Shown here piece after piece: positions 15,208-40,511 of a stretch of 64,000 nucleotides of DNA (position 1 is its first letter; each line of letters starts with the position of its first letter). The DNA comes from Amoeboaphelidium protococcarum X5 (taxonomy: Eukaryota > Fungi > Aphelidiomycota): NCBI GenBank assembly GCA_023515725.1, contig JALDTO010000266.1:62001-126000 (forward strand), written 5' to 3'. The notes beneath the pieces are model-generated. The model was given only the letters and a program-made list of their open reading frames with translations, made no database searches and was not told where the DNA came from. A program made the translations under genes and the position numbers.

Positions 15208-16289
15208 TCAAAATGATTTCATATTCTTCTTCTAAGTGCTAGCATAGTAGAAATACAGCGCAATAATAACAGCAACGACAGCCATTAGCTTGATCACAAA
15301 CTAGATGAAGCTGAATGCGCGAGATTTCACACCACCGCCTAAATCAGGACCACTTGACTGGCCACTTTACCCAACGTCCTCATGCTTGGAAGAGTCCACT
15401 GCCTCTTTACCGCCGTAAACAGTTATCTCTGGAGCCAGTTGAGTAAACGTATTCACGCGTAAAATGTCATGATTATCCACAAGATCTCCGGTGGCTGCAC
15501 TGAAACCGATGTATCCTGCATTAGGCAAGTTCACATTGGACACCACAAAGCACTATTACCAACCGGTTTCTCCTCGATCTGTAAACTCTAGCTTGAGAAC
15601 TTTATTCTTAAAGTACGTTGCTCTGGCAACAATTGAGTTTCCAACACTTCGTAGATTAGCCTCACAGCCTTGGCCGGCCATAGAGGCCTTGTTATCATTC
15701 CAATGATCATACTGCTTCGTACCATCATTCACCATGGCACTGATGTAAGGAAATGAGTGTTCGTGTTAACCATTAGGATAGGTGTCGAAGAATATACCCA
15801 AGCCTTTAAAGTTATCCTTGCCACCAAATACAGAGCCTTCTTCAAACTTCTCCGCAGTGTACCAAAAGGCAAATCCGTCGCCATGCTGTTGTGACTGACC
15901 GCCGTGAATCTTGAACTCGAACTCGACCGACCACGCTTCCGAAGCGACGGGACTACACACTATTAACATCAATTCGAATTAGATATCACAGACTCAAAAA
16001 ACAATATCAACCACAATGCTTACAATTTAGAATACAACCATCCGCGTTAACTTTTAGCTAAACTTGTCAATCTGACATAATCAAAGACTTTAACCAACAC
16101 GTTACCACCGAAATCCCAGTACTCATTTTCGAACTCATCATGCATGAATGGTGGATAGAGAGAGTGGCTGTAAATTGACGGGCCGAGATTTTGATCAAAG
16201 CCACCGTCCTCATTGTTGGAGAGCACCAGACTGAAATTACACAGCCACAAGTAAATTGACACTGTGATTAACTTTTAGATTAGAAACAT
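15208..16289 (-). CDS. VIP36/ERGIC-53-like L-type lectin cargo receptor (1 intron)
   Basis: Signal peptide; VRLT, HGDGFAFWY, FKGLGIFFDTYPN, GYIGFSAATGDLVDNHDI; C-terminal TM helix and KKNMKSF tail. Intron at about 15953-16023. Confidence 0.9.
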
Positions 16290-16649: not shown

Positions 16650-17919
16650 TCAATCCATCTTCTCTTCATGGCCAAACTTGTCAGGAAACACGTCCGCCAG
16701 CTTGTCAAACTCTTCAGTTGCAACAGCATTAGTGACTGATGTCTAGTAATAAGACGGAAATTAATGTTAAACCGCCTCCGAAGGCAATGCTGCTGAATTG
16801 ATTCCATTTCCAAAAGTTGCTTAATTCGTAAGATCAGACTGTTCCAAAATAGTAGGCAACTCAGGATGAGGTGATATAGAATTCACTGCAGGTAGAGTGA
16901 TACAATACGCACAAGAACAAGTCTAGCTACTATCACCATGACCCATATGCCACGAGGAAGTCTGATTTCCAGAGCTATACTAAATCTAAGACTGCTGTGA
17001 AATCATTGAGAAAGTGCTCGGATAATACTAGGAGTAGCTTCCTATTTGTGGATTACCAGATCCAAAGTAGGGGAAGTTCTCTAAAAATCCTTCAATAGGA
17101 GCGGGAATTGAATCATACATAGCAGTATCTTATGAAGTGGCTTGTTAATAGTACACATCCGCAACTTCTTCAAAATTACGCTGCATCAATGCAGGAGTAG
17201 ATTGCGCAAAAGTAGGCTTCTCTTGACTGAAATACAAACCAGTTTGAGGAGTATCTTCCTACTACTAATCCGCACAATCTTTATCTAATGTACTCGCTTT
17301 GTTTTACTAGCGTTTGTTATTATGCGCGAGAGTGTGTCTCCTAGACTTGTGTGAGCTCAGAGCGGTCAAATCAGGAGCACTCTGTCTTTTGCTCTGCTTA
17401 CTTCTAGCATGGTTGCGATAATCACTGCTACGAATCTTTCCCGTAAAAACACCATCCTTAAATTCACATTGATGATCAGGATCGATTCTCCAGTAACTTC
17501 CCTTACCAGGCCCATCATCATCAGATTTTGGAACTCTTGAGAATGCCTTGTTAATGGTCAAATTATGACGAATAGAGTTCTACACATCGGATGATAAGAG
17601 GCTATAATTCATTATACCGTATTATATAAGTTCATACCTGCCAACCGCCAGTCTATAATCTATAGTACTCAGGATACTTGTTAGATATCCAATCATAAAT
17701 GGTAGACAGTCGAGCCTTCTCGCCCGGCTGTGACATTATAGCCTGGCCGATCAGAGATGCCAGCGACAGTTTCGGCCTCTTTATCACAGCTTCACCTCCG
17801 TTGATATCAGCCAGCTATTCCTAATCTAATCCCGGCTGTACAGTGTCATTAAGGGGCGAGAAATAGAATAGATCTTGCTGCGAATTTAGAATGTTTGATA
17901 CTTCGTTATTTGTTTACAT
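16650..17919 (-). CDS. Forkhead-box transcription factor (1 intron; start uncertain)
   Basis: [15 protein letters not shown]...LSTIYDWI...GGWQ|[13 protein letters not shown]...[10 protein letters not shown], with intron 17580-17637. Stop TGA 16650. Nearest in-frame ATG is 17919. Confidence 0.88.
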
Positions 17920-19801: not shown

Positions 19802-23794
<3,993 letters not shown>

Positions 23795-33470: not shown

Positions 33471-35092
33471 TCATTATTGCGGGCGAGGAGGATCGTATCG
33501 AAATGGAACCGGCCTTTCACCACCGTCACGATTTCTTGCGAGAAAGATGTAGCGAATGTTTCGTGCCGCATTCACATCACGGTGCCAGATAGCTAAGCAA
33601 TTCTTATTTGGGCAATGCTTAATTCTCCATACTCGTGATTGAACAAGCTCACACTCACAATTACTACATCTTTGACTGGTTCGATACTCAGGGGCCAAGC
33701 GGACTCTACAGCGTTTCTTCAGCTCATAAAACAGCCGCTTTTTAGGAGTCGCAGGATATCCAGGAGAAGCAGTGTCAAAGTTGCCAGCGCCATATGCTAT
33801 GATGGTGTTATGGTCAAACTAACCATCTTGGCGGAGAGTTAACATACGCGCCAAATTGTCATAGGCCCTTTGACGCTTGGAGAATAGCTTTCTCCTCAGA
33901 TTTCGCCACATCTCAGGACGGTAGAAGCCAGTGAATGCATCTCTATGTTGCAGTACGTACTGCAAATGTTAGATGATTCCCAGAAACGAAGTTTTTAGTG
34001 GAAGGAATGTGGGCCATGGCATTAACGATCCCTGGAGCTCTTTCATTCCATTCAGCCCGCTTCTTTTCACCTAAATTTTCTTCGTTCTCTTCACGCCATC
34101 TGGCAGTCGTGTATACCAACTCATGCTTTCCATTTGCAAACGGCGTCTGCTCGGTTGGAACATCTGGGATTCGGTCATCAGGACCACAAGAAGCAGCCAG
34201 AAGCACGCCACGATTGACGTCAATCCCGATAACGCGAGTTTCATGGTTTACATCCAGTTCTTGATATCCGGTACCATCGAAAGCAAACCCGTAGCGGCTA
34301 GCAGGAGGGGCAGGATACGCTGGACTTAAAACGGAAGCAGAACAGCCAACACCATCGGATGTTATGGAGTAGCCAAAACGCCTTCTCTGATTTCCAGTAG
34401 TGGAGACCTTGTTCAAATTGAAACAATGTGACCACAAAGCTTGAGCATTCATCTGACGAACGTCTGGCAGATTAGCAGCAACACAAATTTCCTTCAATAC
34501 ATTGGAGGTGATCAGGATGTGCTTCTGCGTAAATCCATTTAAAGGCAACAACGCGTAAACGTTAAGCAGAGGACCTTCATTGTTCAGCAGATACTCCTCC
34601 TCATACATTTCATGGTTATTTTCAAATGTACGAAGGATACGCCACATGGATTTCAGATACAGATGCCAGTTGTTCTGAAGACTAGGCTTGTCCATTGGAA
34701 GATTGCAAAGGATGTACTAACGTGCGCGCGACTCGTAATAGTCCAGGTAATATACCACCAATTCTCCGTTACCACAATTATTAATGATTTCTGCAGGATA
34801 AGAAGGCATTTCTTCAATATCTTCAGGCGGATCTATCAAGGCCAAGACGTAAATAGCAAGAGTATTAACATCATTTTCCTCCAAACAGAAGCCGAGATGC
34901 TTTCGAAACTTGTGGCGCAGCCATTGTTTCAGCCTTGATGGCAAATTTGTGCTTATATGTCTAGCGCAATCGTCATTGTGAGCTGAAGCCAAGGTAGTAA
35001 CCATGTTTGAGTAGCCTCACATGTCACACCAAAACAAGTCAACGGGACGACGAGGAACATAATTTTAACTGTTAAGTTCAAGTAGTTACTAT
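33471..35092 (-). pseudogene. Fanzor1-type (eukaryotic TnpB-like) RNA-guided nuclease, main part, disrupted
   Basis: SITSDGVGCS, RuvC-I RVIGIDVN (D 34219-21), IIAYGAGNF, RuvC-II PEYRTSQ (E 33687-9), Zn ribbon CSNC..CPNKNC, RuvC-III WHRDVNAARNI (D 33576-8). One-base frameshift in the T5 run at 33992-6, in-frame TGA 35017-9, cut by an LTR element at 35092. Confidence 0.9.
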
Positions 35093-35274
35093 TATCAGAA
35101 TATGATCACACTAGACTGTGAGAATCTATGTGTGGCTTAGCATAGAGTCTGGGAAATGTGGCACACTCGAGAGCCTAGAACGTATACAATGGTGAAATGG
35201 CCAGCCATGGATTGAACAGTGATCTTGTATTCTATGAAATTATTGAAACATCAAACTCTACTACTATTTTGTTA
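35093..35274 (+). repeat. 5' LTR (TATCAG...TTGTTA)
   Basis: Direct repeat of 39433-39614. Confidence 0.95.
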
Positions 35275-35286
35275 CGTTATCAGCAC
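35275..35286 (+). promoter_or_regulatory. Primer-binding site CGTTATCAGCAC (half-tRNA-Ile type)
   Basis: Immediately 3' of the 5' LTR. Complementary to GTGCT[A/I]ATAACG of the tRNA-Ile(AAU/IAU) anticodon arm. Confidence 0.75.
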
Positions 35287-35291
35287 TGCTC

Positions 35292-36077
35292 ATGAGCTAA
35301 CAAGCAGCAGCAACCGTGTCTACACCAGCAACACCAACATCCAGCCGGATCTCCGACAGCGGGATCAAGATCGGCAACTACTGCGTACTAGAGAAAGCTC
35401 AACACTACGAGCTCTGGTGCAAGAAGATGGAGACTCTTCTTGTATGCATGGACTTATGGGATGACAAACTGAATCAACCTATTGACACTAAGGAAACGAA
35501 ATTTGCCATGGAGTCAAACATCTCTATGGACATCTTGCAGAATCATATTGACTGTTAATCCGCGTCTGAGTATTGGTCTGCCTTAAAGAAGACTTTTGCG
35601 CCAAAATGCATAGCGAATAAGGTGGATTTTGTCAAAAAGATCGCTAAGTTTGAGTTTGGGGAAGACGTCCAGGGTGATTTCATGCGTGCCAAGGCATTGG
35701 TACGCGGTCTAACTGCCGCAATGGGTGAAAAGCATATTGCAGTGCAGGATCTAATGTTGATGATCCTTATTGCAGCCCTACCTGAGCATTTAAGACCAAT
35801 TCGTGCCGTTATCACAGCTGGCGAGAAATTATGTGCTTGGGATGCTCTTGAGTCCAGATGTGTACAAGAGGATGCAACTTCAAGCCCTTCCTCTCTGAAA
35901 TCCTTCAAGACTAGAACGCATCGTGGGAAGTGCTTTGGTAAATCCTGCTACATTTGTGACCCATCCCTAAGACCAACCTGTTCAAAATGCAAGGAAGCGA
36001 AGATGGAGAAGTATTTCCACAAGGAGGATTCTGATTTCTGTCTGAAACAGTAGAATAAGGCTAATGTGGCCGAATGA
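35292..36077 (+). CDS. Copia gag, ending at TGA 36075-36077
   Basis: ATG 35292; YELWCKKMETLLVCMDLWD, ILIAALPEHL, Cys/His-rich C-terminus. Confidence 0.85.
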
Positions 36078-39000
36078 GATTAGGCCCCGAAGGACTCTTA
36101 GATGTGGGTGGTCGACAGCGGAGCTAGTGAACATTACTCCTATAATAAAAAGTGGTTTTCAGACATTAAATCTTTTAACACTTCTATTGGGACAGCAGAT
36201 TCGTCAATGTTGTGCACATCAAAAGGAACTGTCAATCTGACCACCAAGCAAGGGACAATACCTCTGAAGAACGTCTTCCACTGTCCATCTTTGAAAGAGA
36301 ACTTACTCTCTGTATCAAGACTATGCAAAGATGGCTATACAATGGTATTCTCAGGAGACAAAGCCCTCTGTTTTAATGACTTCAATATCACTAAGTAGCC
36401 GCCACCAATTTGGGTTGCCGAATCTTCAAAATATGACAAACTGTGGAGAATCGACCTAAGTAGTAATAGTAAGGCACTGTCATCCAGCAGTCCAGTCGGT
36501 AAGTAGATATCTTAGTGTGATGAAATGCATCAGAAGCTAGGACATCTGAACATCAAGGATACTTTGCGTGTATGCAAAGAACTTGGCATGGATTTGAGAG
36601 AGTCTGAATGTTCAGAGTGCACAGTGTGTATTTAAGCAAAAAGTAGGAAACCATCCATGAGCCCGCTTGAAAGGAAGGCCGAAAGAGTAGGACTTAGAGT
36701 TCATAGTGACATATGCGGCCCTCTTCCCTTGGACTTGGAGAACAATAGGTACTTGCTGACCTTTACAGACGATCACTCAAGATTCACTTTTGCGTTCTTG
36801 CTGAAGAAGAGATCTGATACCTTCAAGTACTTTTAATACGTTCACAAAGCCTTAGCAAAAGATGGTATCAAAGTGCAGTCCAGTACCTTTTCTGATCACT
36901 CCATTAACGAATTGGACTTGGCTAATCGTGATCCTACAGTGCCAATCCGCTATTTCAGAAGCGATAATGCATAAGAGTATCTGTCCACCGAGTTTTAAGA
37001 CTATATGTTGGTGAATGGGATTGCACATGAGCCCACAGTGCCATATACGCCTCAGCAGAATGGTATCAGTGAGCGTAAGAACCTCACACTATTCAACAAG
37101 ATCCGCGCTATGCTTATTCAGTCAGAGCTCCCGGAAAGATTTTGGGGAAGGGCCGCTTTGACAGCAGTGTACTTGACAAATATCAGCCCGACAGTTGCGA
37201 ATGGTGACAAGAGCCCATATCATGTCTTTCATGGTAGAAATCCGTCGATAAATCACCTCCATACCTTCGGAGAACATGCATTCATTCACATCCCATCTGA
37301 GTAAAGAGGCAAGTTAGATGCTAGAGCGACAGAGGCTATATTCATTGGGTACTCAGAGAGTGAGTCAATACTGTATTTTTACAACTTGGAGAAGAGAAAG
37401 ATAGAAAGAACGAATGGTTTTACTTTCCCATCAACTTAAGTATTTGGCAATAGGTTAATTCTAAGTGGTAAGAAGGAGGAACAACATGAGAAGGCTCCTG
37501 TGTCGTTCGAATTTGAGATGTACTTACGCTCTAGCTCCAACGACCCATAAGTGGTATCTGACTCCTCAGCTACTCATACCTAGTCAACTGAGATGACGCC
37601 GGGGGCGATTTCACGCGATATTCAGCCTCAGACTGGTTCCGATGGAAACTCTGCCAGTCTTGTTGATGAACAAGATTCCTAACCATTAGAAATTGATACA
37701 CCTGTTATTAAAGCTCCATAGGATATAAGTTCTAGAATTGATCCATGTAATATTGTGGCTGGGAAAAGAATTAAAAAGGCAAGGATTGCTACGCACCAAT
37801 GCAAAGCTCTCATAGTTCAGCATGATCGTGATCCTTTGTCTGTGACGGAAGCTCTATCTGGCCCCGATCGGAAACACTGGCGTAAGGCGATGTAAAGAGA
37901 GACGAAAGGGCTCATTGCTAGGGGGACTTGGATCGCTGTCAAGAAGAATAAGGGAGATCGTTTGATTAAGTGCAAATGGGTCTTCACTAGAAAGCGCAAT
38001 GACAAAGGACAAGTCGTTAAGTACAAAGCCCGCCTAGTTGCTAAAGGGTTCTCTCAGGTAGCTGGTGTGGACTATCAGGACACGTACGCCCCAACCGCCA
38101 GAACAAACTCTCTCAGGATAATGGTAGCCACTTGTGCGTCCAAGGATTACGAACTTGATTAAGTTGATGTTGTACAAGCTTTTGTTATTCCTGATCTTCA
38201 GGAGGAGTTGTACATGGAGGTGCCTGAAGGTGGCCTGTTAGATTGCCCTTCAGATTCAAAGTTGCGCCTGCTCAAAACACTCTATGGTTTAAAGTAAGCC
38301 GCCGCAGAATGGTATAAGCATCTATGTAGTTGCTTGCAATAGCTAGGATTTTTGCCCACGGCGTCAGACCCTTGCTTCTTTCATAGATAATCTGATGATG
38401 CTATGGTTTTGGCTCATGTAGATGATATGCTACTTGGAGTGAAAGGAGTTGTTGCCATGAAGTCGTTGAAGGAGCAGATCAAATCCATGTTGGACATCAC
38501 TGATTGTGGATAAGCTAACTTCTTCCTGGGTCTACATTTGGAGAGAAATCGACTGGACAGAACCATATTGATGCATCAACACCAGTTCATTGCAGAACTC
38601 TTAGAGTAAAGTGACATGTCATATTGTAAACCATCTACAATTCCGATGGAGCCAGGTTTACAGCTGAGCAAGGACGACTGCCCCCAAACGGATTACGACA
38701 TAGAGGCGATGAAGAGTATACCTTACCGTGAAACCGTCGGAGCTCTTCTCTATGCTGCATGCGCAACTCGGCCAGACATCTCCGCCGCCGTTGGAAAGGT
38801 GTGTAAGTTCAGTCAAAATCCTGGGGTTAAGCACTGGCAAGCCGTCAAGCGAATCTTGAGATACCTTAAGGGCACTAGCAACTTAGGGATCTTATTGGGA
38901 GGCCATCATGGTACTGTTATATAAGGCTGGTCAGATGCTGACTGGGCCGGTGACATAGATCAGAGAAAATCCACTGGTGGTTACGTATTCAAACTTTCTG

Positions 39001-39461
39001 ATTCGCCAGTCTCGTGGTCAAGCAAACTTTAGAATGTTGTGGCTCTATCAAGTTGTGAATCGGAATATATTGCGTTGGCCAACTCCGCTAAGGAAGCTAT
39101 GTGGCTTCGTCAATTGATGAAGGATATTGGTTACAAGCAGGAAGAAGCAACCGTCATCAATGAAGATAATTAAGGATCTATTGCTTTAGTCAAAGGTGGG
39201 AGCGCTCACTCTAGATCTAAGCACATCGATGTTCGCCATCATTTCATAAGGTATTGTGTGCAGAATGGAGATTTGAGAATAGTTTATTGCCCAACTGAGA
39301 AAATGATTGCTGACATAATGACTAAAGCTCTGCCCGCCTCGAAATTTGTAGAGCTGAGAGCCCTATTGGGTATGGCAACTTCAAAATTGTATCAATTGCC
39401 AAATGGTCACAATCTGTCTGATCATGGGGGCGTATCAGAATATGATCACACTAGACTGTGA
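36078..39461 (+). CDS. Copia pol (PR-IN-RT-RNaseH), same frame as gag, intact
   Basis: [84 protein letters not shown]. No TGA until 39459. Confidence 0.95.
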
Positions 39462-39614
39462 GAATCTATGTGTGGCTTAGCATAGAGTCTGGGAAATGTG
39501 GCACACTCGAGAGCCTAGAACGTATACAATGGTGAAATGGCCAGCCATGGATTGAACAGTGATCTTGTATTCTATGAAATTATTGAAACATCAAACTCTA
39601 CTACTATTTTGTTA
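39433..39614 (+). repeat. 3' LTR
   Basis: Appears identical to the 5' LTR; preceded by a short G-rich tract (ATGGGGGCG). Confidence 0.95.
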
Positions 39615-39770
39615 ACTATAAATAGGAGGAAGCAAGTTAACGTTAAGATCTTTACACAAGATATAGACAGCCGCTTAAATGAGAAGTGACCAATGCGTCT
39701 ATGAAACGTCTAATGAAGTTAATCATCGGTTGATCAATAAGCTATTTATATTTTGATCAAGCGCAAAACA
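39615..39770 (-). pseudogene. Probable N-terminal remnant of the Fanzor gene beyond the LTR insertion
   Basis: Removing the element and one TSD restores a frame (..NFIRRFIDALVTSHLSGCLYLVQRSQRQLASSYLQQLLELNSQNYVPRRP..). Degenerate further upstream. Confidence 0.5.
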
Positions 39771-40190
39771 TTTTGTTAAATTTATATTACGCATTATTAT
39801 ACGTCGGCTCACGCTTACATGGTAGTTTTTGGTCGTGCGCAATTATATTAGTACACATCAAGGCTGAATGTAGAGAGGTGTCATAGTAAAAGAGTCTTCT
39901 CATTATGGCCAACCTTCTATTTTGAATTGTGATGCCAACGCAAGTTTAAACATGCTCCTGAGTGAAGAGTAATTTGCAGGGAGTGAGAAACGCCCACATT
40001 GTAATTGACGCGGCTGAAAGCGCGCCTGACCTTTTCCGTGATTCGCTTAAAATGTGGAAAATACTGTAATTTGATCGAGCCGATTTCGATGATAAAAGTA
40101 CAACGCGTGAAAAAAAAACAAAGCTATTAACGTTTCAATTATCAATGTAAATTATATTCCCTTAATAATTAATCTGTGCGTCTGAATGAT

Positions 40191-40511
40191 TCATTCTTCA
40201 TTTACCGGTTGATATTATTTGATGTCATAGTATTCAATGTCGCCAGAGAGGCCGACGAAATAGCCAGTCTCCAATTCCAAGCCATATTTCTTGGACAAGA
40301 CTGATTAGGCGCGCTCAACCCTTTCAATCACTTTAGCAGGGGCCGGCTGTCCAACAACAGCATTCAAGTCGACGCCGTACAGAAACTCGCATGCATAACC
40401 TCTAATGACTTCACTAGCGTAAGAATCTAAGCCAAGCATTTCAATCTCCTCCTGGTCAAACATCATATCTTTGCTGCCGTTAACAATCTTGAACCCAAAA
40501 AAATCCGTCAA
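40191..40511 (-). CDS. Small hypothetical protein or gene fragment (5' end unresolved)
   Basis: Protein-like frame FFGFKIV...FLYGVDL...GYFVGLSGDIEYY ending at TGA 40191. No upstream in-frame ATG found before 40466. Confidence 0.4.

Follow-up and report, generated by a model that had tools for sequence, protein, structure and literature searches.

An in-frame UGA at the gag/pol boundary of Ty1/copia retrotransposons in Amoeboaphelidium protococcarum, a host with UGA as its sole stop codon: a probable case of programmed read-through

A Ty1/copia retrotransposon of the aphelid Amoeboaphelidium protococcarum X5 carries a single in-frame UGA between gag and pol, and three further families of copia elements in that genome carry one at the homologous or equivalent place. 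We propose, with a probability of roughly 0.7, that this codon is the site of a programmed read-through depending on a short nucleotide context, which would yield the Gag-Pol fusion, a mechanism that we infer from the comparison of sequences. What is new here is the presence of a gag-UGA-pol retroelement in a host for which UGA is the only stop; the kind of arrangement is already known (Tj1/Tosmo, Tca2, MuLV). Our literature search found no paper tying Amoeboaphelidium to retrotransposons. The window, i.e., the whole stretch of DNA that was analysed, is 64,000 nucleotides long (contig JALDTO010000266.1, positions 62,001 to 126,000), and all coordinates given below refer to it.

The retrotransposon of the window is a Ty1/copia element of 4522 bp, located at 35093-39614 on the + strand, and both of its LTRs are adjoined by ACTAT, the 5-bp target-site duplication (Table 1). 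The preliminary description had noted that the LTRs appear identical and, indeed, they match at 182 of 182 nt. Pfam searches on the stop-free pieces of the element returned, in this order, Retrotran_gag_2, Pol_BBD, gag_pre-integrs (weak), rve and RVT_2, which is the order of copia elements. The overall arrangement is gag - PR - IN - RT - RNase H, with the integrase ahead of RT and the RNase H recognised by motif alone: the DADWAGD-type motif found within 38925-39300 is that known from the copia RNase H, and a Pfam search of the RNase H pieces gave no match, nor did one of the flanking host ORFs. The stop codon of pol (39459-61) sits within the 3' LTR, 29 nt in. The element is a young, intact, and recently active Ty1/copia retrotransposon.

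Table 1. Features of the Ty1/copia element and its borders (positions in the window)
Feature	Position	Strand	Evidence or remark
Target-site duplication ACTAT, left	35088..35092	+	same 5 bases flank both LTRs
5' LTR, 182 nt	35093..35274	+	100% identical to 39433-39614
Putative primer-binding-site-like stretch	35275..35290	+	directly 3' of the LTR; ~15 nt kept at the equivalent place in family H
gag ORF, 261 codons, 3 TAA/TAG as Gln	35292..36074	+	PF14223 Retrotran_gag_2, E 6.8e-5
gag Cys/His region	near 35926-36040	+	Cys/His spacing kept in family H
Putative recoding site GAA-TGA-GAT, TGA at 36075-36077	36072..36080	+	GAA-TGA common to families H, B, X
pol ORF, 1127 codons, without internal TGA	36078..39461	+	in the frame of gag
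Aspartic protease region, DSGAS at 36114-36128	36105..36338	+	PF22936 Pol_BBD, E 2.6e-20
Integrase: N-terminal HHCC zinc region (36516-36632), core, SH3-like part	36516..37301	+	PF13976 (weak), PF00665, PF13683, PF25597
Reverse transcriptase RVT_2	37926..38651	+	PF07727, 181.8 bits across 1 TAG + 5 TAA, no TGA
RNase H region, DADWAGD-type motif	38925..39300	+	motif only
Polypurine-like tract GGGGGCG, function inferred	39426..39432	+	adjoins the 3' LTR
3' LTR, 182 nt	39433..39614	+	100% identical to the 5' LTR
Target-site duplication ACTAT, right	39615..39619	+	

The frame running from 35292 to 39461 counts 1390 codons, among which 18 are TAA, 10 are TAG, and two are TGA, i.e., one internal (36075-77) and the terminal stop (39459-61). 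TGA represents ~2% of the trinucleotides of the window, so that a random frame of 1390 codons should contain ~28 of them; a single internal one is seen. Moreover, this codon falls within a linker of ~25 codons, from the Cys/His region to the protease Asp, which makes up ~1.8% of the frame. Our stop-codon count agrees with the preliminary description, which had reported one internal TGA between gag and pol and a pol otherwise intact (1127 codons free of internal TGA). The distance it had given, with the TGA nine codons before the protease motif, was approximate: by our count, the catalytic Asp (36114) lies 12 codons past the TGA and an in-frame Met (AUG at 36102) lies 8 codons past it.

Judged from the genome sequence, UAA and UAG are Gln codons and UGA is the sole stop. 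Our genome-wide searches covered the 23.6-Mb assembly (346 contigs). The strong RVT_2 matches (n = 31) span TAA and TAG, and TGA is found in one of them, a degraded copy; likewise, TGA is found in two of the 35 Pol_BBD matches, both in degraded copies. In pairwise alignments among four copia families, the partners of TAA and TAG are the Gln codons CAA/CAG or TAA/TAG themselves ~4 times more often than the background. Since the RVT_2 matches span TAA/TAG and, with one exception, not TGA, and since TAA/TAG align with Gln, UAR can be assigned to Gln and UGA to termination. A UAR-to-Gln code has been published for Amoeboaphelidium protococcarum (PMC5304391). The proposal that this host terminates only at UGA, made at the outset from the window, is thus borne out by TAA and TAG lying inside conserved domains in alignment with Gln, and by the near absence of TGA.

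The gag/pol junctions that we read are those of family G, to which the element of the window belongs, and of families H, B, X, and J; they do not include A, C, D, E, F, or K. Loci were joined from overlapping stretches of the same locus, solely for the stop and LTR counts. Family G has two full copies, one in the window and one on a 4.3-kb contig; 9 sites distinguish them, and the TGA is common to both. An independent assembly of public reads from the source sample gave a contig that covers 36030-37523 and is unchanged at the TGA. The element was encountered in DNA contigs and in no RNA run. DNA contigs from another strain, a biofilm metagenome, and a second organism cover pol only, at ~96-97% identity, and not the junction; with the protease piece as query, no relative was found in metagenome contigs. 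The proteins of family H are 52% identical to those of family G overall and 66% identical in the RT. In family H, the TGA stands at the homologous site (..KASKAAE*HS..) in 3 of the 3 intact loci examined. The question of whether genomic copies share the TGA, raised in the preliminary description, is therefore answered positively for both G copies and, at the homologous site, for family H. In family B (four loci, ~32% amino acid identity to G) and in the single element X, a lone in-frame TGA lies past the zinc knuckle and ahead of the protease. The RT identity among the gag-TGA-pol copia families of this genome is only 34-66%, and the close relatives among G, H, B, and X are only G and H. The TGA is replaced by TGG (Trp) in one decayed H-like copy, which also contains many frameshifts and other stops; this TGG is derived, because G and H both have TGA.

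Gag and pol share one frame in 5 of the 5 families examined, for which the chance would be ~(1/3)^5 if the frame were irrelevant. The elements of families B, H, and J each consist of a single frame with exactly one internal TGA, and their LTR pairs are 100% identical. Identical LTR pairs are in fact present in all the families checked, and near-identical copies exist elsewhere in the genome for all but one single-copy family. The copies of the checked families are 99.8-99.9% identical, have different flanks, and give alignments that stop at the LTR edges; they therefore correspond to separate recent insertions, and the families are live.

The nucleotides surrounding the stop are also partly shared. 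The contexts are GAA-TGA-GAT in G, GAA-TGA-CAT in H, and GAA-TGA-CTT in both B and X, so that GAA precedes the TGA in the four families (4/4) with a stop between gag and the protease, and C occupies the +4 position in three of them (3/4). The +4 base is also C in family J, and the AA at positions -2/-1 comes from the GAA. In the sample of 23 long host ORFs of the window, which is small and may include intron borders among its ends, the terminal TGA has C after it in 1/23 and GAA before it in 0/23. In the fission-yeast elements Tj1, Tcry1, and Tosmo1-3, the GAA-TGA-CT 8-mer is strictly conserved at the gag/pol stop, and this stop is reported to be essential for the transposition of Tj1 (PMC10085805). 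UGA read-through is promoted by AA upstream and by C or CU downstream of the stop (evidence cited in PMC10085805), and it usually leads to the insertion of Arg, Cys, or Trp (PMC13517186). The element of the window has a G and not a C after its UGA, an observation that speaks against read-through.

According to the programmed read-through that we favor, the majority of ribosomes would terminate at UGA 36075-77 and release Gag, while a minority would insert a residue at this codon, probably Trp, Cys, or Arg carried by a near-cognate tRNA, and continue in frame to produce Gag-Pol (PR-IN-RT-RH). A high Gag:Pol ratio would in this way be set by the leaky UGA. The signal would be a short local context, consisting of the UGA and the preceding GAA, with C or CU after the stop in the sister families, and a downstream RNA structure is seemingly not involved. 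Indeed, MFE folds of the 53-90 nt past the stop were no better than those of dinucleotide shuffles in the five families (z from -0.16 to +0.85), the values for the element of the window being +0.20 (53 nt) and +0.55 (90 nt), and a crude H-type pseudoknot scan past the stop gave scores at or below those of mononucleotide shuffles. The preliminary description had proposed a programmed recoding that a downstream structure could stimulate: the core of this proposal is supported, as the stop is kept across families, and the structure is not, as its folding and pseudoknot scores are no better than those of shuffled sequence. We also considered a recoding of the UGA to selenocysteine and rejected it, as no SECIS and no Rfam match at E <= 1 were found in 34500-40200.

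The most unusual side result of this analysis concerns families J and C, whose stops are internal to the integrase. In family J, represented by four or five near-identical loci, gag runs into the protease without a stop. Its lone in-frame TGA lies 545 codons in, with His-His before it and Cys-X2-Cys after it, that is, within the N-terminal zinc domain of the integrase; the 27 residues ahead of this TGA match PF13976 positions 25-42, the match ending exactly at the stop. When PF13976 was searched genome-wide, the match contained '1 TGA' in family J, in family C (four loci), and in a single degraded element; for family C, this TGA count within the PF13976 match is the whole of the evidence. Since the zinc domain continues colinearly past the TGA, a working integrase in J and C would require the in-frame decoding of UGA. 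We consider these integrase-internal TGA codons as the strongest argument that read-through does operate in this organism. The RT of J and C, which share the stop position, are 35% identical, while those of B and C, in which the position differs, are 58% identical; the stop position is therefore not simply following phylogeny. It is conceivable, although rather doubtful, that an in-frame UGA is the rule in the copia elements of this host, with a plastic position and an unusually efficient decoding, maybe tRNA-assisted or position-dependent, which would represent an intermediate towards codes in which all stops are ambiguous.

Several other explanations of the gag/pol TGA have to be weighed against the programmed read-through. 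Gag could stop normally at the UGA and Pol be made separately, without any fusion, by reinitiation, by internal initiation at AUG 36102, or from a minor internal promoter. This AUG, only 8 codons past the stop, stands directly before WVVDSGAS, and one or more AUG codons also occur on the way from the stop to the protease motif in families H, B, and X, the rough joint chance of such linker AUGs being ~1-2% from a Met content of ~2.5%; moreover, a weak promoter is present in the Tca2 junction (PMC2194720). We nevertheless regard a separate production of Pol as unlikely: it needs no common frame, whereas the five families (5/5) keep one and have no second TGA in the linker, and an unfused Pol would need another path into the particles. 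Furthermore, reinitiation cannot serve family J, whose stop interrupts the zinc domain of the integrase and is followed by an AUG only far within the core. The same integrase-internal stops could favor a bypass of the UGA by a non-canonical or host-specific route, e.g., a dedicated tRNA, distant cis elements, or a context-dependent sense reading of UGA remote from the mRNA end (Condylostoma type), in place of an ordinary near-cognate leak, since two families tolerate a UGA midway through a conserved integrase domain. The failure to find a local structure near the stop, the diversity of the bases after the UGA (GAT, CAT, CTT, CAA), the TGG (Trp) at this site in the decayed H-like copy, and the likewise unexplained bypass in Tca2 (PMC2194720) point in the same direction. 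On the other hand, UGA is no general sense codon, as it is absent from the 1127 codons of pol and from nearly all the RT and PR matches genome-wide; GAA-UGA-C(U) fits the known short read-through signals (PMC10085805); and the window contains no tRNA gene. Such a route thus seems improbable to us.

The TGA could also belong to a short in-frame intron spliced from some transcripts. The best-supported host introns of the window start with GTA, end with TGTAG, and measure ~40-71 nt. In-frame GT..AG pairs of 18, 27, 36, and 39 nt do span the TGA, but pairs of this sort are expected by chance, each family having 11-24 of them within 150 nt, none of the short intron candidates starts with GTA, and no TGTAG is found within 400 nt 3' of the TGA in G, H, and J. 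In family B, the only intron options would remove the active site of the protease, and the residues directly ahead of the TGA are conserved between G and H. Splicing is, in our opinion, a very improbable explanation. We give even less credit to the idea of a dead copy, whose TGA would be an inactivating nonsense mutation or an error of assembly. In its favor, family G has only two full copies, and TGG stands at the site in a decayed relative. This relative is itself full of other stops and frameshifts, whereas the element of the window has identical LTRs and a frame that is otherwise open. The TGA is present in both G copies and in the read-derived contig, at the homologous site in H, and at the equivalent boundary in B and X, and a nonsense mutation private to the copy of the window was rejected on these grounds.

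If the UGA is read through as we propose, the retrotransposons of this host depend on a leaky UGA even though its eRF1 has been retuned to UGA only. These families offer at least five natural contexts in which termination fidelity can be set against near-cognate decoding after a change of code. There is also a consequence for annotation, as gene callers using code 6 will split these elements into gag and pol, and the integrase of J and C will look broken.

Several known systems can be compared with the aphelid elements. In murine leukaemia virus also, an in-frame stop, which there sets the Gag:Gag-Pol ratio, is followed by the protease as the first domain of Pol. The read-through of MuLV uses a UAG, an 8-nt spacer, and an essential pseudoknot. 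In the aphelid host, UAG, the stop used by MuLV, is a Gln codon. The UGA-C of Sindbis virus, the UGA-CU of the peroxisomal isoforms of fungi and animals, and UGA-CUAG provide other examples of a leaky UGA governed, as we propose here, by a few flanking nucleotides, although none of them lies in a retrotransposon of a variant-code host, and the element of the window lacks the +4 C. In such short-context read-through, a near-cognate Trp, Cys, or Arg is inserted at the UGA (PMC13517186, PMC10085805).

Tca2 of Candida albicans is, like the aphelid element, a Ty1/copia retrotransposon with a gag-UGA-pol organization in one frame, and since Pol is made there from the full-length RNA, the stop must be bypassed (PMC2194720). 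Tca2 differs by a predicted 3' pseudoknot, none being detectable in the aphelid element. In S. cerevisiae, a 300-nt context of the Tca2 junction gave background read-through only, and the mechanism is still open (PMC2194720). This inactivity of the closest copia precedent speaks against read-through. Tca2, which had been cited as a read-through precedent from the beginning, retains this value for its gag-UGA-pol layout and loses it for the mechanism, since a simple context-driven read-through was never shown (PMC2194720).

The resemblance extends to Tj1, Tcry1, and Tosmo1-3, where a single TGA, preceded by GAA, stands between a gag and a pol of the same frame, and where no structure is required (PMC10085805). 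The GAA-TGA-CT of these elements is identical in families B and X, and the element of the window shares GAA-TGA only. Unlike these Ty3/gypsy elements, which live in hosts using the standard code, the aphelid elements are of the copia type, their host has UGA as the only stop, and a G occupies the +4 position in the element of the window. That GAA-UGA-CU occurs both in copia elements of the aphelid and in gypsy elements of fission yeasts suggests a short signal able to function broadly among fungi and related organisms.

The family G copia element is very compact. Its pol ORF extends 29 nt into the 3' LTR, up to its TGA (window 39433-39461), and the polypurine-like tract lies inside the coding sequence. 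tRNA 3'-end primer sites usually begin with TGG; the stretch directly 3' of the 5' LTR (window 35275-35290, ..GTTATCAGCACTGCT) starts without TGG and is kept in family H, another copia family of the same genome. A TGA-free antisense frame of 328 codons (window 35543-36529, minus strand) overlaps gag and protease, and family B carries one of 381 codons across pol; these long frames are probably a by-product of the single stop codon.

Pol sequence of this kind is also present in three sets of DNA contigs (runs X5, X8 and X9): one set is from a different strain of this organism, one from a second coded organism and one from a biofilm metagenome. In these runs, pol is about 96-97% identical to window 37012-39462 and gag coverage is almost nil, so gag in these sources has either been replaced or diverged much further.

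Terminal TGA is followed by C in only one of the 23 long TGA-bounded ORFs of the window, where C content is 22%, and this rarity may mean that true stops avoid leaky contexts. The frame-restoring host introns identified on the minus strand of the window, 40-71 nt long, all begin with GTA and end with TGTAG (see table).

The multi-copy copia families J and C carry their single in-frame TGA within the integrase N-terminal zinc domain (PF13976) and not between gag and protease. In family J, it is located between the His-His and Cys-X2-Cys motifs of this domain, in the context TTA-TGA-CAA-CAA.

Positions of host introns and of integrase-internal TGA loci (C, contigs of the genome assembly G000; L, a stretch taken from it)
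Feature	Location	Strand	Remark
Intron	window 15953-16023	minus	GTA...TGTAG, frame restored
Intron	window 17580-17637	minus	GTA...TGTAG, frame restored
Intron	window 20557-20603	minus	GTA...TGTAG, frame restored
Intron	window 21847-21896	minus	GTA...TGTAG, frame restored
Intron	window 22996-23035	minus	GTA...TGTAG, frame restored
Family J integrase TGA	L031:1237-1353 = G000:C249 near 498,000		
Family J integrase TGA, further loci	C264:2175148-2175282; also C136, C212, C133		
Family C integrase TGA	C164:107512-107676; also C207, C253, C314		

Copia insertions also cluster at G000:C264:1,502,000-1,515,000, where one family B and two family H elements are found within about 12 kb (stretches L009, L010, L026, L040, L047, L059 and L060); one of the family H copies is interrupted or rearranged, with a 532-nt internal repeat.

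At the gag/pol junction, family B (L037:1390-1400) and the single copia element X (L035, minus strand) present the 8-mer GAA-TGA-CT. Exactly this 8-mer has been described as strictly conserved among the fission-yeast gypsy elements Tj1, Tcry1 and Tosmo1-3 (PMC10085805).
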